Position numbers and translations under genes: made by a program
Shown: positions 4,218-62,991 of the stretch, one piece after another
Numbering within the stretch: the stretch's first letter is position 1
How the letters are laid out: the number at the start of each line of letters is the position of its first letter
Assembly: GCF_006345805.1 (NCBI RefSeq)
Contig: NC_043002.1
Span: 74,958,001 to 75,022,000, forward strand
Length of the DNA: 64,000 nt
Direction: 5' to 3'
DNA from: Octopus sinensis
Lineage: Eukaryota
The notes under the pieces: generated by a model
What the model saw: the letters and a program-made list of their open reading frames with translations, nothing else
What the model was told of the DNA's origin: nothing
Databases searched by the model: none

Positions 4218-4447
4218 TTGAGCTAGCAAGCTGGCAGAATTGTTAACATGTCTGATAAAATGCTTACCAGCATTTCTTCAGGCACTTTATGTTCTGAGTT
4301 CAAATTCCACCAAGGTCAGCTTTGCTTTCCATCATTTTGGAGGCAGTGAAATAAAGAACTAGTCATGTGCTGTGGTTCATATAATTGACAAACCCCCTCC
4401 CTCAAAATTTCAGGCCTTGTGCCTATACTAGAAAGGGTTATTATTAT
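4218..4447 (+). mobile_element. tRNA-derived SINE, family B
   Basis: GCAAGCTGGCAGAATTGTTA head, GAGTTCAAATTC B-box, tail GCCTTGTGCCTATACTAGAAAGG followed by (ATT)n. Confidence 0.85.
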
Positions 4448-4451
4448 GAGA

Positions 4452-4918
4452 GCACTGCATAACTGGCATCCGTGCTAGTGGAGCACTAAGAGCACCATCC
4501 AAGCGTGATCATTGCCAGGGCCGCTGACTGGCCCCTGTGCCGTTGGCATGTAAAAAGCACCATTCGAGCGTGATCGTTACCAGCGTTGCCTTACTGGCAC
4601 TTGTGCCAGTGGTATGTGAAAAACAAAAACATATGAGCGAGGGTGTTACAAGTGCCGCTGGACTGGCTCCTGTGCAGGTGACTCATAAAAACACCATTTG
4701 AGCGTGGCTGTTGCCAGTACCGCCTGACTGGCCCTTGTGCTGGTGGCACGTAAAAGCACTCACTACACTCTTGGAATTGTTGGCATTAGGAAGGGCATCC
4801 AGCTGTAGAACCTCTGCCAGTTCAGATTGGAACCTGGTGCAGCCACCTGGCTCACCAGTCCCCAATCAAACTATCCAACCCATACCAGCATCGAAAGCGG
4901 ATGTTAAATGATGACTAT
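4452..4918 (+). mobile_element. Non-autonomous retroelement with internal tandem units of about 65 bp and the shared (GAT)n tail
   Basis: Five ACTGGC-starting units from 4462, then TTAGGAAGGGCATCCAGCTGTAGAA ... GGATGTTAAATGATGA. Confidence 0.75.
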
Positions 4919-4929
4919 TATTATTATTG

Positions 4930-6345: not shown

Positions 6346-9164
6346 ATTATTTTAGTATTATTAGCATGTAATAGATTTGTAAAAGTTATCAGTAGCATGT
6401 AATAGCTTTATAAAAATAATATTATATCAAATTTTTTAGCTGAGGAGGGGAAAAATTTGAAAATTTAGAAGTACAATGGTTATGATGTTAAAGTTTAGAC
6501 TGTTAATTGTATGATCATAAACATCACTGTTGAAATATTTGCTGTTGTCTTTAAGCCACATAGATATGTAAATGTTATACATAAGTGACAAAATATGGTA
6601 CCTTTATCTACACCATTACTGTAGCTTATCATTGGATAACGAAGCCTTGGATATGTCTGTATAAAAGCCTTGGTGGATCAGGACAGACTTGAGGTTAAAC
6701 ATGAACAACAATTCTTAACTTTTATTCTTTAAACCTTTAATTTGTTTACTGCAATTTGTCTGGCTAGGAAGATACCAGTGCTACATGGAGGATAAAGACC
6801 TCTAATTGTATAAAGACATTCTTTAAGGAAGCAGTTCTTATATTTCTATCAAACACTTTGACTTGATCTTTTATATTATTTCATTTCAGTTTATTTCTTT
6901 AATTAAAAATCTTGGCACAATTTTAAAGATTTCTTGCAGTTTATTTTAAGTCTGAATATTAAAAGTGAAAAATAAAAATAAAGACAAAAGGAAAAATATA
7001 TAATTAAAGAAAAAAAAAAGGTTATGTTTCTTCTTTAGTTATTAATTTAATACAATGTATATTCAGCACTTGCATTCAGCTCTAATGAACGAATTGGGAG
7101 ACTTTAATAATCTAAATCAGTCTGTATGTTGCTTTCATTAATATATGCTGAAAATCATTTCTATTATTGTAAACCACAAGAATAACAAATAATAGCGAAC
7201 ATATAATTTTAGAAATGAAACATTTCTTTTGTTATTGACAGGTTAAATAAGCCATTGGAACAATCTGAATTACATGTTTATGTATGCTTTAGTTGTAGAA
7301 TTAGTTGTTTCTGTTAGTGGTAGTTTCAGGTGTGTAAGCTATGGAATGTAACTGCTGACATTTTGCTTGTGTTTGCACGGCAAATAGATATTTCTACCAT
7401 TTGATCTGTTTTTAAATATTGCCATAGCACTTAAATCTAATTTAAAATAAACTGTCAGTGTGTAAGTGTTGAAGAATGGTGGCGGGACTTAAAAGCATAC
7501 AATTTTATTTAGTTTATTACGTAATTACATGTTCATTTCTAAATAACATGTTGCACAACTATAATTTAAAGAGGGTGTAGGGGGGGGAGTGGTGGTGGTG
7601 TTGTTGTGGATGTATTTTCAGTTTATATTGGTTTCCTTCATTTCCAAATTTCAAAGGATGGTTGTGATGCTGACAGCAGCAGCAGTAGTAGTGGCAATGA
7701 TGATGATGATGGTGGTGGTAGTGATGGTGATAGAATTGGAGTTTAGGTAGGATAGAAGAGAAATGGAGAGATGATGATAATAATAATAATAATAATAATA
7801 ATGATGATAATAAAGAATAAGATTGCAGTGTGATTGAAAGTATGCTTTAGCTGTGATGTAAATAGTAAGGACATTTATTTATTTATTCTTACTTTTTTAT
7901 ATTTATTTTATTTATTTATTATTTTTTTTTTACTTCTGTTGAACCAAGCATAGTGTGCTGGAAACTATTTTGAACCAAATCTAACGTTCCAGTTGCAATA
8001 TAAATCAATACTGTCTATGTCATTTAATTATTCCCTTTCCTGCTCTACCTAGCATCTGACTGCTATTACATGAGAACAACATCGACTTGCTTGGCTATTT
8101 ACATGTATAATGTACCAATAGTTTGGCTCTCGCAATCATTTCACTGTCAAATCCTGTACATGCAACCTTCAACAAGGGGGTTATATCATAAATGTGGTGT
8201 ATACAACCTTTTATTTCATTGCCTTTACATTCATTAGCAAGTGCCCCCCCCACACACACACACATCTCCACACCCTTCCCTATTCTTCATGTTTTATTTA
8301 TACATTTGATCACATTTGGTTGCCTATTCTTTTCTCGAAGAATGTAGGTAGAAATTGTGTTTATTTATTTATTTTGTTTGTTAGCATTAATCTTAAGTTC
8401 CCCCCCCCACACTTTTTTTTTTTTTTTTGGTTGTGGTTTTGGTCTCAAATCTTCCATCAGCTACCCTGCCCTCATACATTTCTACAGTCGTGTTATGTAC
8501 TTGTTGACATGGGAACATAATGTGTTCCTGTCATAATTTCTTTATCAGCACAACTGTTTTCTCATGTTTGTTTATATTATGTAGTTTGTCTTGTATTTTC
8601 TTCATCCTCATCTAAAGAAACAAATTTTAATTACAAGGATCTTCTGTTATAATCTGTGGTTACATTACATTTAATTTTTTTTTTTTTTTCGATGTTAGCA
8701 ACATATATTTATCATGCCTTGAACAAACTGCAAGTGTGTGTGGGTGTGTGATGGAAGTAAGAGCTAGTATTCTGTTAGAACACAGCAAACCTTGTTCTGT
8801 TCTACAACATGTCACCCTAACATATGTTTATTTACATTGTGTAGTTTATTTACTTGTGTTTTCTCAAAGTATTATGTAATTTTGTTATTTTAGTTTTCTC
8901 CTTATAGCTTGAATTCTTATCCATATTATTCATGTATGTGTGTGCCTACATGTGTGTGAACATACAGATTATAAAGAATATGAGTGTCCATCTCCATAGA
9001 CAATGACACACATAATTTAAACTCAAACAGACACACACACACACACACACATGCACAAATAACAATGGTTGAAGCTTGAACTAATAGCTATTGGTTTTAT
9101 TGCTGTAACATTAACCATTCGTGTAGCATGGTTTATGCAGTTTTTACCGAATTATCACCATTAT

Positions 9165-9400
9165 TTAATGTCTTGTTTTTCATGCTAGCATAGGTTGGAT
9201 TGTGAACCAGAAAGTTGGTGAACCAGACAGTTGTTTCAAACTCCAACATCTACTTTGGCATAGTTTCTAAGGCTGGATGTCCTTCCTAATGCCAGCCACT
9301 TTACAGAATGTACTGGGTGCTTTTTATGAGGCACCAGCACTAGTGATCTCTCCAAGTAACTTGGAAGACATGACCTCTTTGACTGAGGGACAAGCAATAG
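9165..9400 (-). mobile_element. SINE/retroelement 3' module with the shared (GAT)n-type tail
   Basis: GGCTGGATGTCCTTCCTAATGCCAGCCACTTTACAGAATGTACTGGGTGC is the reverse complement of the shared tail. Confidence 0.75.
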
Positions 9401-10768
9401 TGCAGGAGGTGGCTATATGGTTGAGAAGCATGATAGAGGAACAAACAGGAACTGGTGTCTTGCTGTAGAGTGATATAGGGTTACCCCTGTTGGACAAGAA
9501 AGATGGTTGCAAAGATGTCTACATGCAACCTCAAGTTACAGGAAGGTGAATATAAGAAAAATAATATAATTATAGAATGTAAAATTCCAGTCTTGGAGTA
9601 GTCATCTAGAAAGTCTATTCATGCTTTCAGTATTAATTTTTCTAGTATGCTGTGGTTCACTTCTACAGCCACCAGAACTGATTCCAAAACATGCTTTCTA
9701 GTTAGTATTGAAAATTTATTTTTAACCTTGATATATCTTGATCTCACTCGCTCTGAAAACACCACTCCTGGATTCTACCTGGTTTCCCTATTGTCCTTCT
9801 AATCATAAATCTACCCAAGACAATCAATAGAACTTACTGAATCATTTACCAAGTGAAAAATCATTTCTTTAATCACGTTATAGACTTACATCATCATCAT
9901 CACCTTCACCTTCATCAAAGCTGTTGCCGCCATCACCACTGTCATTGTTGCCATCGTTGTTATCATCATCATCATCTTGTGTTCTTTTTCTTTTGCATCT
10001 TCTTTATCCCTCTTTCTGACTTCTTCCTCTTCATCCACTATGTTATCACTTCCATGTTTCATTTTCCTCTTCCTCATCATCTCTCTCTACTTTCTTTGTC
10101 TCCTCTTTCCTGGTTGTCTTCTTCCAATTGTTTCCTAATAGCTGCACTTTTGTAGGTGTGTGCAGCTGCTGTTTCGAATTAATCTAAATTATAGAATATG
10201 CATTGATGAAAGAAAGCAAAAATTTGAGGCGAGGATGAAGATAAGTTAGCTAGCTAAATAGATAGAAAGATAGCTGGATGGATAGATACATAGAATAGAG
10301 CATACAAACCAATCACATAAAAATAAACATAGCTAAGCCTCTTTCTCTCTTCCCTCTTTCTTTCTCACCTTTATTCCCTTATTCTTCCATTTCCTCGCTC
10401 TCTCTTTCTCTCTCATTATTCTTAAACACATCCTCATTACTTTCAAGAATGTTTGCTATCTTTTCCTTTGTTGAGTTTAAATTCCTCCAATTATTGTTAC
10501 ACTGTCGCTACACATGTATTGCATACATGCATATACATACATGCACACACACATGCACATCTTACTGCCACCTCTACAGAAAATTGTTACATCCTTTTGC
10601 CACCATCACCGCCACCACTACTACCACCACATGCATTACCTTTACATTAACTGTCGTGCTCAATTTCCACTACTTGTTATGTCCTTTTGGGGAGTGGTGA
10701 TGGCGGTGTGACATACACATGCACTTCAGTGCATGCATATATATATATTACAACATGCATATTGTGTG

Positions 10769-12664: not shown

Positions 12665-12890
12665 AAATCACCATTTAATGTCCACCTTCAATGCTGGCAT
12701 GGGTTAGACAGTTTAACAAGGAGCCAATGAGTCAGGGACTGCATCATACTGCAGTGTCAACTTTGGCATGGTTTCTACAGCTGACTGCTTTTTCCTAACA
12801 CTAACCACTTTACAGTGTGTAATGGGTGCTTTTTTAAGTTCCACTGGCACATTTTGGTCACCATGTAGCTTGCAAGCCAGTAAACCCAGG
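12665..12890 (-). mobile_element. Shared (GAT)n-tail module, antisense
   Basis: CATTTAATGTCC..GCTGGCATGGG..GGTTTCTACAGCTG..TTCCTAACACTAACCACTTTACAG. Confidence 0.7.
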
Positions 12891-13389
12891 ATGGGAGGAT
12901 TTGTTGGCTTCTCAGCTACATGGTCACCTGTGTGGGTGGGTGGGTAACTGAGAGTGAGATCGTTGCTGCGGAGGAACTTAATGAAAGGAGATTGACTTGC
13001 ATATTAACAATGTTTGGTTTCTCATTTAGGCTTTCTTTGACTGAGAACACTGATTCTTTTGCTTAAATATTTACTCTCCTCTTTCTTACTTTTAGTCTTT
13101 ATGTTTCTGTAAAGAATGTTTCTTATTTTATTTTACCATGGTTATAAATGCTTTGTAAAGGTGTGAATTTCATAATTCATCTATGCAACAAGGCTACTTG
13201 ATCCGTTAGAAAAATAAATCACATCTTATGACATACAATGTAGTCTCAAATATTATGGCACCTACTACCATTTTTGTTCCTAAAAATATATTAAGTATCC
13301 AACCCCTCCCTGTGAATATGTGAATTATGTAAATCCTTTTCATTTGAGATATGTTATGAAGAGTTAAGCTGCTCACTTTGTGTCTATCT

Positions 13390-15327: not shown

Positions 15328-15570
15328 AAACCCATCGTCATCACCATCGTTTAACATACGCTTTTCCGTGCTTGCATGTGTCAAGCAGAATTTCTTGAGG
15401 CAGATTTTCTACAACCTGATGCCCCTCCTGTCATCAACCCTTGCCTGTTTTCAAGAAAGGTGATATTTCCTCATAGCCAGATATGTTTTTCATAGAAGAC
15501 TGAAAGCAAACAATTTTTCTTGTAGGACATTGATTCCCAATGACAACCATCATGTGATGTTTAAGAAAGG
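15328..15570 (-). mobile_element. Family A' SINE 3' module (shared (GAT)n tail), antisense
   Basis: The reverse complement aligns by eye to 16150-16330 and to the tails at about 38900-39110. Confidence 0.75.
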
Positions 15571-22966: not shown

Positions 22967-24499
22967 GGAATATATATATATACATATTATACATGCACAC
23001 ATCTCTGTATGTGTATATGTATGTATATACATGAACACATATCTATATATGTGTATCCATGCATATACACACACACATACATGCATGTGTGTGTATGTAT
23101 ATATATATATATACATATTGTGCAAATTACTTGGTAAACAGGTTTTCTATGCTATGTAATTTGAATATATTTATAATAATACATGTGTATATCATTGGTG
23201 GGTAATCTTATTGTGCCTTATATATAATGTGATTCACTCAATCAATACAAATTCAAAACATATTGTATACTTATTATTTTGTAGATATTCTCGGCCATTT
23301 TTGTTTTCTTTTCACTGTTGTTGTAGTTTTTGTTTTTGCTGTTAATAATAATAATAATAATAACGATAATAATAATAATAATAGTAATAATAATGGTGGT
23401 GGTGGTGGTGGTGGTGGCAGCCACATTAGTTGATGTTGTTATGTCTTACACCATTTATTTTTGTTTTGTGTGAATGGCGTAGAAAGCAATATAATGTTAG
23501 TGGATGCTGTTTATCAAGAAGAAATTGGTAAATAAACAACAAGAATACATATATATATATATATATATATATGTTCTAGTGGAACTTTCCTCAGCGGTAG
23601 GTCTATGTTTCAGCACAGTTACTTGTAATGCTTATTGATTATTTCAGGCAGATTGCTTTGGTGGGAGGGATGAGTGGTATGCCTTTCTCAGCATTTTTAA
23701 GCACTACAAGATGATAGTGATGATTTTAAATTACATGTTGAATATATCAATGTACTCGTGTATTATAGCATTACCATTTGTTTATATTACTGATTGGTTT
23801 TTGTTTTTATTAAATCACCTCCACTTTCCAAGAGTGAATAGGGCTTGGATAGCTGGTTTGACATGGTACTGGACAACCAGCTGAGAGGGTAGTGGTTTAT
23901 TTCCTGTTTCTGGACACTGTTTTATGCCTGAAGCCAAGACATTTAACTCTTAAATGGTACAGTCCACTTAAATGGAAACAACTATAACAAAGTAGAAACA
24001 ACACTATAGTGCAGGTAGTTGTTGCATTCTAATATAGATTTTTTTTTTAATGTGTGCTTGCAGTACAAAATAGAATTCTTGCTATGGTTGTAGCATGAAG
24101 AGTGATGGCTTCTGTCAAGTAGACATGACCTACATACACTATAGAAAGTAGTAGTAGTAGTAGTAGTAGTCAACACTGATTGGGCTTTCCAGTAATGATG
24201 ATTCCATTTTTTGCAGAAGTATCTAGTGTGTACTATAACTTGGTGGAATGTGATTTGAAGTAGATTTTGCCTGCTATTTCTAACATGTTTAGAGGTTAGA
24301 GATCTTGCAGAGAGTTGTAAAGAAGTCATCTTCAGTATTGCTATTCTGAATATGCTCTGATGCTATCATTTATCTGAGACTATCACTCATGCTTCTCACT
24401 CTGTTAAGAGATTGACTGGCAAACAGAAACAAAGAATTGTGAAAACCTTTTAATTGTGTGAAAGACATGACTACATCTGTTGCTGTTTGAGAAAATGCA

Positions 24500-24680
24500 C
24501 CTAGTACACTCTGTAAAGTGTGAAGTTGTAAAGACCCTCTAGTCTTGTCAAAAGCATGACTCCTTTTTAGTACTGGTGTCATTGAAGCAAAAAAATAATA
24601 AATAAAGCGACCAGTACGCATTATAAAGTGGTTGGTATTAGGAAGGGCATCTAGCCATAGAAATCAAGTCCAAAATATAA
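24500..24680 (+). mobile_element. Shared (GAT)n-type tail fragments
   Basis: GCACCTAGTACACTCTGTAAAGTG and AAAGTGGTTGGTATTAGGAAGGGCATCTAGCCATAGAA. Confidence 0.65.
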
Positions 24681-38589: not shown

Positions 38590-39110
38590 ATATAAATAAA
38601 CACCAGACAAAGTACTGGGGTTGATATGAATAATTAAACCCTTGAAAGCAGTGCCCTAGCATGGCCACAGTCCACTAACTGCAATCAGTACTTGAATTGT
38701 GTGCATGTGCGTAATATATTTGGCTGTGTGGTTAAGAGATTTGCTTCCTAACCATATGGTCTTGTGCTCAGTCCTGTGCTGCACCACGGGCAAGTGTCTT
38801 CTAGGCTGACTAGGCTGGAAACTGAAAGAAACCTGTCGTGTGTGTGTATGTATACATACATACACCCTTGACTAAACATCATATGGTGGTTGTAAAATGA
38901 GCATCAGCATTATACAAGTGATACTGTTAATTTCCTGTCTTCTGTAAAATAAAAACATTTCTAATTTTGGGAAAATGTTATGTTACTTGGAAACAAGTGA
39001 AGGTTGATGACCGGCAGGGCATCTTGCTGTAGAAAATCTGCCTCAGAAAACCCTGCTTGACCTATGCAAGCATGGGAAAGTGGATGTAAGGATGATGATG
39101 ATGATGTGTG
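38590..39110 (+). mobile_element. Family A tail fragment followed by a family A' SINE
   Basis: CATGGCCACAGTCC tail at about 38660; TGGCTGTGTGGTTAAG head at about 38721; GGGCATCTTGCTGTAGAAAATCTGCC tail and (GAT)n. Confidence 0.8.
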
Positions 39111-39819
39111 TGGAGAGAGAGAGAGAGAAAGCAATAAACGAGAACCCTAAAGACTCTCGGAGAATATAAGGATTAAAGTGTGATGAAATGCTGTACTTGT
39201 GCATTAAAGCATGAGATATGAACCAGTGTATAAAAATCTTTACATTGTTGTTGTAGTTGTTGTTAATTTTCTGCACACCAAATTGATATCATTGGCATCA
39301 GTGGAAATAAATAAATTGGTTGCACATGTATTTCTTTCAGTCAACTTTTGTGTTAAGATCAGATTACAAGCCGCTTCCTACAAACATTTATAAAGTCTCT
39401 TGTTACTATTTCCTGCCTGGAATCTTCACTAATTCATCATTGTCCATTTGTTGTCTGTGCACTGACCAGAATTGACATAAAACCTGTCATTAGTAACTTG
39501 AAATCTTGGTGAATAGCTAGTTCCAAGTCTGGCAAGCACAACAAACATTACAAATGGTTGCTTGCACACATCCACGGTTCCTAACATCCACCCTACCACA
39601 CCAAATAAATCTCAGCCCAGAGTTTGGTTGTCTTTGACATTTCTCATCAATTTCTGTGCCTTTCCTTATTTGTGCGTGTTTATTAATACATGCATCTCAG
39701 CAGAATTTTCTGTATATAACTTGTGGGTGACAGAGAAAAATTACCTAAAGAGTTTTGTTGTCTGAAAATTATAACTTCTAAAGTTATCTTGTTTTAAGCT
39801 ATTTCTCATAAAACTGTAT

Positions 39820-39850
39820 TTTATTTGTTTTCTTTTCTTTACAGGTAAGT
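39820..39850 (+). promoter_or_regulatory. Candidate recursive splice site (3' acceptor fused to a 5' donor)
   Basis: TTTTATTTGTTTTCTTTTCTTTACAG|GTAAGT, junction at 39844/39845. Confidence 0.5.
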
Positions 39851-40249
39851 CTTTTTTACACACTCTGTTGTGATAATGCAATTTAAAAAAAAAAACTGAA
39901 AGAGGAAAAAGAGATGAGTTACTTTGCAATTAAGGTAAATAGTCTTTTTTATACATAATTTTTCTTCTTTTTCTTTCATGTTAATGAACAGGTTATAGCC
40001 AAAACAAAACACTTATGAAAGATTACTCCCCCACCCCTCTCTCTCTCTCTATATATATATATATCAGACTCACACATATCATGCTGTTTACTCATGATTT
40101 GTTGGCAACATATAATGCTCTTTTAATGTTTTAGTTAATATCTACAATGTGCTTCATTAATTTTAGAACAAGGATTGAAAAAAAAAATGTCTATCTTATT
40201 CTAACTTTAATGTTTATGGTAGCTCATACATATACAAGGTATTGAAATG

Positions 40250-42084: not shown

Positions 42085-42475
42085 GCAGTTTTCTTATAGT
42101 TGTTTCCTAACCACATGGTTTTGGGCTCAGTTCCACTGCATGGCACCTTGGGCAAGTATCTTCTACTCTAGCCTCACCCAACCAAAGCCTTGTGAGTGAA
42201 TTTGGTAGATGGAAATAGAAAGGATCTTGGCACGTGCATGTGTGTGCTACTGTCTCTTTACTGTGACATTGTGTGACAGTAAGCAAGTGTCACCATCATG
42301 CAAGAAATATCCTTTATGTGAAATCTTCTGAGAGATATCTGGCCATGGGGAAATGTTACCTTATTTGGAAAAGGTGAGGGTTTGTGTCAAGAATGACATT
42401 TAGCTATAGAAAATCCACCTCGGCAAAATTTGTCTGACCCATGTGTGCATACAAAAGTGGTCATTTAAAACAATG
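42085..42475 (+). mobile_element. Family A' SINE
   Basis: CCTAACCACATGGTTTTGGGCTCAGTTCCACTGC..CCTTGGGCAAG head; TAGAAAATCCACCTC..CTGACCCATG tail. Confidence 0.8.
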
Positions 42476-43720: not shown

Positions 43721-44397
43721 AAGTCTGTTGGTTAGGTAGTTCTGATTGTCATTTCAGGAACTACACTGCTCCTGTTGTGGCTTCTTATTTTTATTAATAT
43801 AGATTTTGAGATGATTCATGTTTGTTTCCTGTGTGATTAGAGTTAGATGTTTCACTAGTGTAGTGTAGCATTACTTTGGGTGTAGTATTCTTCATAACTA
43901 GGTACTCTTTCTCACCTGTAAAGTATGAACAAAATTTTATTTAAGTACATAGAGTAATCTTCTACCAGCCTCTAGAATTGTTATCTTAATGACACTTGAA
44001 AAGTGCTATGTTTTATAATGAGGTCAATCTAGTTTATTTATATTAATGTAAATTAAACATTTTATTTAAAATTTAATAGGTGAGAAAGATTAATTGCTGT
44101 TGATTCACAAACAAAATATGTGTTTAGAGCCTGGATTATTAGAAAAGTAAAATGAGTGTCTGATTCCTCTCCCCACCCTCTATGACTTAGTTTGAGGATG
44201 AGGGGAGTGGCCATGTCCTTTTGGTGCATCTCCAAAAGTGATAGTGATAGTAGTAGGGTAGAAAACATCACTGATAAGCTATCCTAAAACCAAACCCAAA
44301 TTCTTGAAAGAGTATGTATTCTGCTGAAAGCCAGATAGTGTTAAACTGGGCAGAAGATTAAAGTCTATTGCTGAAGAACATTTATACCCCTTTTGGG

Positions 44398-46860: not shown

Positions 46861-46903
46861 AATGCCAAATGCATTTCAGTTTTTGGGGTCTTTTTTAATG
46901 ATA

Positions 46904-47272
46904 TGAGGTCTGATCAATAAGTATCCGGACTATTGCCATAGTTATAAAACTAAAGTGCACAGTGAAGGTGCATGACACAGATTGACCTCAAACTCCTCTG
47001 TGCATATGCATTAAGTTGTAATGTTCTGGCTCACTTCTGCTGTTTACAGCAGTGCTTGGAAGGAAGGTGTATTGCGTGTGGTCAATGCGACAATCACACA
47101 TACACACCTTCCTTCCAAGCACTGTTGTAAACGGTGGAAGTGAGCTTGAACATTAGAACTTAGTACACATTCACAATAGAGTTCAAGGTCAGTCTGTGTC
47201 AAGCGGCTTTACTCTCTGTGCTTTAGTTTTGTTACTATAGCAACAGTCCGGATACTTGTTGATCAGACCTTG
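46904..47272. mobile_element. Fold-back MITE, Tc1/mariner type (TA TSD)
   Basis: TA at 46902-46903 and 47273-47274. Ends TGAGGTCTGATCAATAAGTATCCGGACT / AGTCCGGATACTTGTTGATCAGACCTTG; the arms stay complementary to the centre at about 47085. Confidence 0.9.
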
Positions 47273-47477
47273 TATGCATTCACAGCTAGTCACCTGCTTG
47301 CTAACTGCTGCTAGGATGAGTGTTCTTTTTCATTTAATATTTATTGTGTTTTTAACACAGTATGTCCATAAAGGATGTTATCTCAAGATAAATACTGCAG
47401 TAACTGGTCTATCAATGGTGTATACACTTAAAGTATGATACAGAGATGGTTATTTAAATTGAATACTACCTCAATTG

Positions 47478-57220: not shown

Positions 57221-57530
57221 GGAGTTGATGGTGATGTTGTTGCTGCTGCTGATGATGGTGATGTGTGTATAAAGTGGAGCAGGGGATTTTTTTTCTCATT
57301 TTACCTTTTTTTCTCTTCCTACTTCCTGTGACCCCTTAGCTGATGGAGTAATTGTAACTTTATCTTGCATTTTATATACAAAAGATGTGTATTATAGTTG
57401 GCTTCCATGAGAAAGACATCCGTTGTATTATCATGCCTGTCGATTACTCCTCCCAGCATCCGCAAACAACAAGATTTCTCTTAAAGTTATTAAAACTAAA
57501 TCTCACACTGCCGATGCTGTTATTACCAAT

Positions 57531-57549
57531 GCTGCTGCTGCTGCTGCTG

Positions 57550-57620
<71 letters not shown>
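57531..57620. repeat. (GCT)n(ACT)n compound trinucleotide repeat
   Basis: Read directly. Confidence 0.95.
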
Positions 57621-57621
<1 letters not shown>

Positions 57622-59160
57622 TTGTTTTAATTTTGGTTGGAATTGTTTTGACTTGGTAATAGTTTCAATGTCCACCACCAAGCTGTCCTTCTGTAAACAA
57701 CACTTTAGACTAATGTCTCTAGAAGCAGTTTAGACATGTAATTGTTAATTAATTATCTCTATCATCTTCAGCATACTCATTTGACAACAATTCTTTATTT
57801 CTATCATGAATGTATGGCTACCAAATTAGACATCCCACCACCTTTTTTCATCACCACTCCAACCACCACCACCACAACAACAACAACAGTACCATCACCA
57901 CCACTGCCAGTGATAGCCTTTATCATTTATGTGATTTCAGTCACTCCTAGAAATTAATTATTTGCAAGACTGTTAATAATGATTCCTCTGATAATGCTGT
58001 AGGATGTAAGATGGATATGAAAATCTCTCCCTGCTAAGAATGAAGGTGTGGGAGTAGATTTTGAGGAGAGGGTAGAGACAGAGAAAGAGAGGGTATAGAA
58101 AGCGAGCGAGCAAGTAATGTTTTTGAGTTAATGGAAGTTGGTGTTAAATTGTGGAGGGAATGAAGCAAGAAATTGATTATGCAAACCATTTCTGTTCGGA
58201 TAGGCAATTCACCAAATTACTGTCAATAACTAGAAAATGATTGCCAGGCATATAACTCTCTTGATCTCTGCAAATTTACCGTGTATATATATATATATAT
58301 GTGTATGTGTGTATGTTTCATTATATATCAAATGCTAGTCTTTTTGTATTCTTTTTTTTCTTTTTGCTATTCTATTTTTGTAGTTTAAAGTTAAATAATG
58401 TAAATGTTTTTGTGTTTTATTTCTTGTTTGTGTTGGAATTTATTTCCATTTCTTGAAACTTTAAACATTTACAGAACTATTTGCAGTTTAATTGACTTAT
58501 AATCTTGCTTTCCTAATTGAGCTGTGGCAAAATTTTATGGGGTACTATAGCTATTCTTGTATCAATGAGAATTTAGAAGGAAAAAAAAGATCTAATCCCA
58601 TATGTAATATGAATAACGGATGTTTTCATCTTATGTGAATAGTGGAGGACTGAAAATAAATTACTTCACTTCCTTTGATAAAACAGTATATTATTGGGCC
58701 AATGGGCAGGCATATTTGTTATTCATTTATTCATTTATATTGATGCTTGGATTAAATACTATCATTCACTGTTCTTTTTCTTCTTTTCTCCTTTTATTCA
58801 TTTATTTTTTCTCATAGAGCTTTTTAGTCTTGAAATGATGATTGAAAATTGCTGTTTTAATTATTTTTGGTTCCTGTATATATAAATGGAATGTATCATC
58901 AACAATATTTATTTTTCATTTCAATTATCAAACTGGTTTTATGTCTTCAATTTATCTTTCTCCCATGAATAAGCCTTCTTAGAGAACTGATTTGGTTGTT
59001 AAAACTAAATGTTTCTGTGGGCTTAGCTTTATGTATCCATTATTTTTGTTTTTATGAAAGTTTATTTCTTTCTTGACTTATTTTTCCAGCTAAATTGAAT
59101 TTCTTATGAAATTCCACTTTTAACCCTACTTATCATAATCATTATGGTATGTCAGTGTCA

Positions 59161-59198
<38 letters not shown>

Positions 59199-59334
59199 AC
59201 AAAGACTCATACTTTAAACTCCCAACACCTGGCACAAAGTTACCTTCCCATCTCAATTACTCCCCCCCCTTAGTTGTGAGGGTTTTCCCCAATTTCCTTT
59301 TCTTATTCTTGTCTTGCTAGTTACCTCACTAGTG

Positions 59335-59530
59335 CTGAGGGCACAAAAAAGAAAAAAAAAAGTGCACCCAGTATACACTGTAAAGTGGTTGACATTAGGA
59401 AGGACATCTAGTTGTAGAAACAATGCTAAAGCTGACATTGGAGTTCAATACAGCCTTGCACCTTGCCAGATCCTGTGAAACCATCCAAGCCATGCCAGCA
59501 TGGATAACGGATGTTAATGATGATGATAGC
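59335..59530 (+). mobile_element. Shared (GAT)n-type tail module
   Basis: GCACCCAGTATACACTGTAAAGTGGTTGACATTAGGAAGGACATC..GCCAGCATGGATAACGGATGTTAATGATGATGAT. Confidence 0.75.
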
Positions 59531-61334: not shown

Positions 61335-61675
61335 GTGGCTGTGTGTTTAAGAAGTTTGCTTCCAAACCACATGGTTTGGAGTTCAGTCCCACTACTATAA
61401 CCCTGCATTGACTAAGGACTTTTGAGTAGATTTGGTAAACTGAAATGTGTGTGTGTGTGTGCTGCCTTTTCTTGGCACTGCATGATAACTGTGTGTAATA
61501 CTGGCATACAGATAGTGCCATTCATTTCCTGTATTCTGAAAAAAACATGCCTGACTATGGGGAAATATTGCCTTGCCTGGGAACAGGTGAGTGTTGATGT
61601 AAAAAATCTTCCTTAATAAAAACTGTCTGACCCACACAAACTTGGAAAAGTGAACATTAAAATGATGATGAGGTT
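61335..61675 (+). mobile_element. Family A' SINE
   Basis: GTGGCTGTGTGTTTAAGAAGTTTGCTTCC head; CTGACCCACAC..GGAAAAGTGAACATTAAAATGATGATG tail. Confidence 0.8.
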
Positions 61676-62196
61676 GATAGGTTTTGTCTATGGGTACAAG
61701 ACAGTACCACTTGGGAGGAACAGTCTGCTCTGTCATTTATAGATCTTTTGATAATGACAGTTACGGTTGCTGAATTCAGGTGTAACACTTGCATACAAGT
61801 TTCTTTTATTGTTTCTCTTGGTAGTACTGAATGTTTTTTTTTTTGTTTGTTTGCATATTTTCACTCTCACTTCAGGAAAGTCACTACAAGACAGACGTGC
61901 CATCTACTCTTAATAGGTTGATGTTGCTCCTTTTGGAAGTAGTGTTCAGCTGGTCTTTGTTCTGCTTCTTTGGTCTTCCATCCAGTCATTGACCATGGTA
62001 TAGAAAATCCTCATGGGGGGACACAACACAGATACAGTGGCACCATTCAATTCAAGAATGCTAGTATACTAATGTTAAAATGGCATTTTTTATATATTCA
62101 AGTTGTAAATAAAGAACATTTCACGAGTTTTAATATGTTATATAACTTTACAGTCTAATAACAACATATTAATTTCAAATTAAAAATAAATATTAA

Positions 62197-62991
62197 CCCT
62201 TTGAGCCCTGACCTCCTGAACCTTATTTCACCATATACCTGGCTTCCTGAGCAAAATAAGTTGAAAATTAAGTTAGTATCAATTACAGCTCTCAAAGCAA
62301 AAATATCAATGTCAATAAAACTCTGACAACACAAATACACAACAGAGATGCCTACCTGGCTCCTAGTGTCAATATTCCACCTTTGTATGCCAATCGGTAC
62401 AGTATGTTGATCCTCTTTTGATGCAGAGATGAACCTTGCATTCTTGGCAACAGACAGCTGATTTGACAGCTTTGACTGGATAATTCTTGTAAGGAACGCT
62501 GGGGTTTTCTGATTTGAATTTGTTGTACTTCTTGGCACATACGACATGCAATGTGTTTGTAGACCCATCCTCTGAAATACGTGGATAGTAGCAGCCTGTG
62601 CTTTGGAGATGAACAGAAACTGAATCAAGATCACTTGCAGGATATTCTTCTTCATTTTCTGCCTCTCATTCACTCAATTCATCTAATTGAGCGATCATTT
62701 CAGCAGCTGTGAACAACTGCTTACATTGTCATTTTGGTTCAGAAGTTCAGGCTGACTTTGTTTCATGGTGAAAAAACTCTAATTTCGACATCAAAACAAG
62801 CCACATTCAATTCAGAAAGGCAGCAGACATGTTGTTTTATCATTCTATAATCTAGGGGTGAATGAGCATTCTGAATGGATAAAAATAAATCATCGTACTT
62901 CAGTGCAGATGCACTACACCGGTAGAGCAGTGCTATGGTATAGAGAAAAATAAGTCATCCACTGGTAAACCGGTGTTACGGGCTCAAAGGG
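62197..62991 (-). mobile_element. Internally deleted piggyBac element (795 bp)
   Basis: Perfect 12-bp TIRs CCCTTTGAGCCC / GGGCTCAAAGGG. TTAA TSDs at 62193-62196 and 62992-62995; piggyBac-like Cys-rich coding remnant inside. Confidence 0.92.
62369..62791 (-). pseudogene. Truncated piggyBac transposase reading frame (N-terminal segment fused to the C-terminal Cys-rich domain), three TGA stops
   Basis: One frame: MSKLEFFHHETKSA*TSEPK*QCKQLFTAAEMIAQLDELSE*EAENEEEYPASDLDSVSVHLQSTGCYYPRIS...VVCAKK...CCQECKVHLCIKRGSTYCTDWHTKVEY*. Confidence 0.75.

Follow-up and report, generated by a model that had tools for sequence, protein, structure and literature searches.

The junction 39844|39845, on the + strand of the octopus window analysed here (the whole stretch of 64,000 nt), is a good candidate for a recursive splice site, though not a demonstrated one, and its use in the cell is predicted. 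A strong 3' splice site and a strong 5' splice site lie there directly against each other. That the site is a working, splice-competent ratchet point in an intron of at least 64 kb of a + strand gene is considered a serious possibility, a little short of an even chance.

The polypyrimidine tract TTTATTTGTTTTCTTTTCTTTA spans 39820–39841. An earlier note on this DNA called it nearly pure, a fair description given 19 pyrimidines in 22 positions, and it places TT at −6/−5. The tract is followed by a CAG acceptor at 39842–39844 (AG at 39843, C at −3) that ends at 39844. A GTAAGT donor at 39845–39850 lies flush against this acceptor; the earlier note had reported it as perfect and immediate, and its positions are exact to the base. 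Two branch-point-like motifs match yUnAy at the sequence level only: TTTAT at 39820–39824, with A39823 at −22 from the junction, and CTCAT at 39805–39809, with A39808 at −37. The run upstream of the acceptor AG is free of AG for 45 nt. The dinucleotide occurs at 39782, 39797 and 39843, which leaves 39797 as the closest upstream copy and 39799–39842 without any other.

This anatomy resembles that of the fly sites. In Drosophila, TT is present at −5/−6 in 196 of 197 ratchet points, and only five of the mapped branch points fall outside −36 to −21 (Duff et al., 10.1101/006163). The A of TTTAT falls within this range, and that of CTCAT barely beyond it. A putative branch point about 21–36 nt upstream, with no AG between it and the acceptor, is found together with the tract, its TT and the strong juxtaposed CAG|GTAAGT. 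Zero-nucleotide exons such as those of Ubx, kuz, Bx and luna share with the candidate the long pyrimidine tract, the TT at −5/−6, the CAG|GTAAGT core, the distance of the branch-point-like motif and a short cryptic exon ending in a weaker donor. They also share a very long, exon-free intron, which here is an apparent setting only. Fly recursive host introns measure 11–133 kb (Duff et al., 10.1101/006163). Unlike the octopus candidate, which comes from another taxon and is known from its sequence alone, the fly sites are defined by junction reads, saw-tooth coverage, lariats and ultraconservation.

Juxtaposed sites were scored with a generic matrix covering −20 to −3 of the 3' splice site and +3 to +6 of the 5' splice site; its consensus frequencies are general ones, not trained on the species. 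The 3' part of the site scores 9.0 bits, matched by 0.15% of AG dinucleotides on the + strand, and the intronic part of the donor 4.7 bits, matched by 0.64% of + strand GT. The full donor at 39845 reaches 9.0 bits with a generic matrix. At 13.7 bits the junction ranks top of the 350 AGGT sites on both strands of the 64 kb, and the runner-up scores 7.1. The runner-up, TTTACAG|GTGAGA at 43916 on the − strand (7.1 bits), and a further juxtaposed motif, GGGAACAG|GTGAGT at 61586 on the + strand (6.4 bits), are both within chance expectation.

The core AGGTAAGT occurs three times on the + strand (28549, 39843 and 54821) and is absent from the − strand; base composition predicts about one copy per strand per window. 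Only the copy at 39843 is preceded by a pyrimidine tract (17 of 20 positions), the other two having 8 and 7 pyrimidines. The number of sites of at least 13.7 bits expected per 64-kb strand was 0.0044 when the distributions of acceptor and donor scores in the window itself were convolved, and 0.005 in order-3 and order-5 Markov simulations of 200 windows each. Multiplying the AGGTAAGT count by the 2.8% of + strand 20-mers with at least 17 pyrimidines gave 0.02–0.08, a rougher estimate, but one that takes into account how patchily T-rich tracts are spread in the real sequence. For one window the juxtaposed motif is a true outlier, at about 1 in 20 to 1 in 200 (about 0.005–0.05 expected). It is also the only unusual feature among those cited for the site.

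The same figures bear on a chance juxtaposition, in which a T-rich tract and CAG happen to stand before GTAAGT in non-coding DNA rich in A and T, the site is untranscribed on the + strand or ignored by the spliceosome, and selection plays no part. This reading is given nearly the same weight as a working site, again below an even chance. Tracts of the required kind are readily supplied by the T-rich + strand, and the core is expected about once per strand from composition, as set out above. By our own arithmetic, at 0.005–0.05 sites per 64-kb strand, chance alone would place hundreds to a few thousand sites of this strength in a genome of 2–3 Gb. The site is, moreover, the best pick in 64 kb, and the scan spans many windows. 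Against this stand the gap of 6.6 bits, or about 100-fold, to every other AGGT site, and the co-occurrence at one place of TT at −5/−6, an in-range branch point, an AG-free stretch, a weaker downstream donor and a purine-rich stretch. A 3' and a 5' splice site of this strength within a transcribed intron would also be expected to see at least occasional use.

How far a motif match can be trusted depends on the animal. For introns of more than 50 kb, Shepard et al. (Table 2) tabulated the density of ratchet-point motifs per 100 kb, sense against antisense, in a set of animals that includes no mollusc (PMC2773006). The values are 2.2 against 0.10 in the fruit fly, 1.03 against 0 in the mosquito, 0.81 against 0.10 in the beetle, 0.54 against 0.066 in the sea urchin and 0.48 against 0.12 in the bee (PMC2773006). 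Sense motifs are therefore 4 to more than 20 times commoner than antisense motifs in five of five tested invertebrates. In eight vertebrates both strands carry about 0.1, with a ratio of 0.9–1.5 (PMC2773006). Since in every animal studied the antisense strand of long introns has about 0.1 motif per 100 kb, and the vertebrate sense strand hardly more, these counts lend support to chance juxtaposition (PMC2773006). If the octopus genome resembles those of the tested invertebrates, so strong a sense-strand match would probably be real; if, being large and rich in repeats, it resembles those of vertebrates, the match would probably be a chance one. The window itself contributes one site on the + strand against none on the − strand, a count too small to indicate enrichment.

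The strand was assessed from base composition. The window is rich in A and T (A 19163, T 22960, G 11294, C 10583); this composition, like the abundance of microsatellites and repeats, is compatible with a cephalopod origin. Once tandem repeats and homopolymers had been masked, every one of the 32 two-kb bins held more T than A (skew −0.081), and 21 of them more G than C. An excess of T over A is described as a general sign of the coding strand in transcribed regions in the passage of PMC5786239 that cites Touchon et al. 2004. Because T exceeds A in every bin, the + strand is probably the sense strand, and one transcription unit probably crosses the whole window, as judged by base skew alone. 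The candidate thus sits on the probable sense strand, which speaks against chance juxtaposition. The skew may instead be linked to replication, or the window may be intergenic.

Searches for exons and genes were consistent with a long intron. Pfam gave no significant match among 277 stop-to-stop ORFs of at least 50 aa, the best value (E = 5e-4 among 127 ORFs) being at noise level. No exon-like period-3 peak was found in the 64 kb, all peaks being trinucleotide microsatellites, and a scan of the same 64 kb for exons bounded by splice sites yielded no convincing coding exon. The Rfam scan of the window returned no hits, and ARAGORN detected no tRNA genes anywhere in it. An 82-aa ORF adjoining the site (39517–39762) had no homologue in a protein search, and a 62-aa minus-strand ORF overlapping the site gave no record on exact look-up in protein collections. 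An exact 25-mer scan of metagenome contigs produced 0 hits. The long-intron, sense-strand setting is thus drawn from T over A in 32 of 32 bins and the lack of a detected exon in 64 kb, with host gene and strand taken from the skew only. A position within a long intron, on its sense strand, is considered likely for the site. Use of a motif match of such strength, averaged over invertebrate-like and vertebrate-like regimes, is given an even chance or slightly better. Combined, these two judgements leave a working site somewhat below even, with chance juxtaposition about equal.

The site has no second copy within the window, and its derivation from a repeat was rejected on that ground. The nearest elements repeated in the window lie at 38873–39109 and 42100–42458, in agreement with the earlier statement that the site stands in unique sequence with the closest SINE several hundred bp away, which holds within the window. 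Sequence that recurs within the window makes up just 16% of it, so a repeat-free stretch of 3 kb is ordinary and would also fit chance juxtaposition. A minus-strand U1 snRNA gene or pseudogene was likewise rejected: the match stops after ACTTACCTG, which is merely the complement of a consensus donor, and the Rfam result was empty.

Downstream of the junction, a second donor-like motif, AAG|GTAAAT, is present at 39932–39940 with its junction at 39934|39935. It bounds a putative cryptic RS-exon of 90 nt at 39845–39934, which is non-coding and carries stops in all three frames. The coordinates and the stops agree with those reported earlier. The second donor is the weaker of the two, with 3.4 bits against 9.0 bits for the donor at 39845, and is the sole positive-scoring donor in the 300 nt downstream. 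Cryptic RS-exons are short, poorly conserved and usually frame-disrupting, and are skipped if the regenerated donor is the stronger one (Joseph et al., PMC8605326). The candidate exon is longer than the roughly 50 nt typical in flies (PMC8605326).

Nevertheless, the second donor and the three-frame stops are near random expectation and carry almost no weight. An equal or better donor 30–200 nt downstream is found for 16% of random + strand positions, so that the weaker donor at +90 counts for little (chance 0.16), and 53% of random 90-mers from the + strand are interrupted by stops in every frame. These figures fit chance juxtaposition. The interval also contains a purine-rich, splicing-enhancer-like stretch, AAAAACTGAAAGAGGAAAAAGAGA, at 39891–39914 (22 of 24 purines). 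Such a tract occurs in just 2.5% of 90-nt windows on the T-rich + strand, and is given little weight as it was spotted post hoc. The reading of the site as a ratchet point or RS-site, put forward in the earlier note, stood as far as every feature legible in DNA is concerned; the part of it that leaned on the RS-exon did not add to the case.

The acceptor (9.0 bits), the sole positive-scoring donor at 39935 and the enhancer-like stretch would also suit an exon that is expressed. In this alternative 39845–39934 would be retained in some mature transcripts as an alternative exon (a 5'UTR exon or an NMD-triggering poison exon) or as an exon of an ncRNA, and the GTAAGT at its start would serve as an alternative donor or be incidental. 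Expressed RS-exons are known in flies and form the majority class in mammals (PMC8605326). The donor at the start is, however, far stronger than the one at the end, an arrangement that mostly led to skipping in the tested fly cases (PMC8605326), and the 90 nt are without coding capacity. An expressed exon is considered unlikely. The candidate is like pseudoexons and poison exons of long introns in being a non-coding interval of about 90 nt that is bounded by an acceptor and a donor and contains stop codons. Unlike it, ordinary pseudoexons have no consensus donor at their start, which here is the stronger of the two.

A further comparison is with vertebrate RS-sites, for which a model of RS-sites and RS-exons was reportedly proposed by Sibley et al. 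in 2015, with CADM2 and other long neuronal genes as examples. The candidate would work in the same way, with a downstream donor that defines the exon and then competes with the regenerated one. It also shares with them premature stops in the RS-exon and a large, repeat-rich genome; its motif is nearer to the stringent insect consensus than theirs. In mammals only nine fully suppressed intronic RS sites have been definitively noted (PMC8605326).

If the site is a working ratchet point, its action can be outlined on the model of flies and vertebrates. What was observed is the motif, how rare it is, how it is built and how the two strands differ in composition; + strand transcription, use of the site and each step of the outline are inferred. 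The strong tract and CAG would be recognised by U2AF and U2, and the branch point would lie near −22 or −37. U1 bound at AAG|GTAAAT (39935) would define the cryptic exon of 90 nt, perhaps with some help from the purine-rich stretch (39891–39914). Ligation of the upstream exon to 39845 would then remove the first part of the intron and, by placing GTAAGT right behind the exon, regenerate a strong donor. The regenerated donor (9.0 bits) would be predicted to beat the donor at 39935 (3.4 bits). The next step would remove the 90 nt together with the remaining intron, and the mRNA would keep no trace of the site.

GTAAGT can pair along its whole length with the 5' end of U1, and long introns need protection by U1. 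In a setting that appears long and free of exons, the consensus donor might thus bind U1 snRNP without splicing and block premature cleavage and polyadenylation (telescripting), the acceptor-like tract being coincidental. Such a role would leave the strong adjoining upstream acceptor, which is the statistically odd part of the site, without an explanation, and it is considered very improbable.

Should the site prove to be used as a ratchet point, molluscs would gain their first described recursive splice site. The earlier note knew of no description of recursive splicing in cephalopods, and a literature search agreed, finding none for cephalopods, octopus or molluscs; co-occurrences of the terms were incidental. 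A used site would be a new case, in a new lineage, of a mechanism well known in flies and vertebrates. It would also bear on whether bilaterians in general remove very long introns stepwise, or whether this is peculiar to insects and a handful of vertebrate genes. Cephalopods are a useful test: they are invertebrates with genomes as large as those of vertebrates and rich in repeats, and the two groups of genomes are opposite in motif enrichment (PMC2773006). A lone motif match is weak evidence and settles neither possibility. More broadly, cephalopods might split the giant introns of their large genes through insect-type ratchet points, of which this site would be a conserved example; recursive splicing would then reach the lophotrochozoans, suggesting bilaterian ancestry. 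This wider proposal is tentative and rather doubtful.

Other features of the window were recorded. A large foldback at 46901–47275 consists of two nested inverted-repeat pairs. Its inner arms (46961–47070 and 47104–47213) are 110 nt long, 81% complementary and separated by a 33-nt loop, and its outer arms (46901–46962 and 47214–47275) measure 62 nt at 84%. The foldback may be a MITE-like or hairpin element. At 4400–4920 a GC-rich element (about 0.5) forms a high-GC island amid DNA of 30–37% GC and holds a 65-bp unit repeated 4.1 times with a 69% match (array at 4491–4759).

A cysteine-rich ORF on the − strand at 62372–62665, ending in ...CCQECKVHLCIKRGSTYCTDWHTKVEY, overlaps a 172-aa ORF at 62158–62673 on the same strand. 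The cysteine-rich ORF resembles the zinc ribbon found at the C-terminus of piggyBac-type transposases; as its Pfam scan gave no match, the likeness is no more than an impression. One interspersed repeat has a translated signature such as HPV(H/Y)(S/T)VKWL(A/T)LGRTSS and occurs at 9239–9412 (−), 12778–12915 (−) and 59218–59475 (+), among others. The 86-aa ORF derived from the copy at 59218–59475 had no homologue in a protein database search. A second repeat family, with the signature (F/V)LQ(L/Q)DA(L/F)P(N/V)(A/I)N, is found at 2378–2626, 4686–4865, 15355–15492, 24373–24663 and 38961–39134. Long microsatellites lie at 72–545, 7562–7878, 9841–10152 and 57358–57730. They include (TA)n-rich sequence near the start of the window, trinucleotide arrays rich in His and Tyr codons, and a CTn-type array coding for poly-Leu/Thr, and the longest apparent ORFs of the window come from microsatellites.
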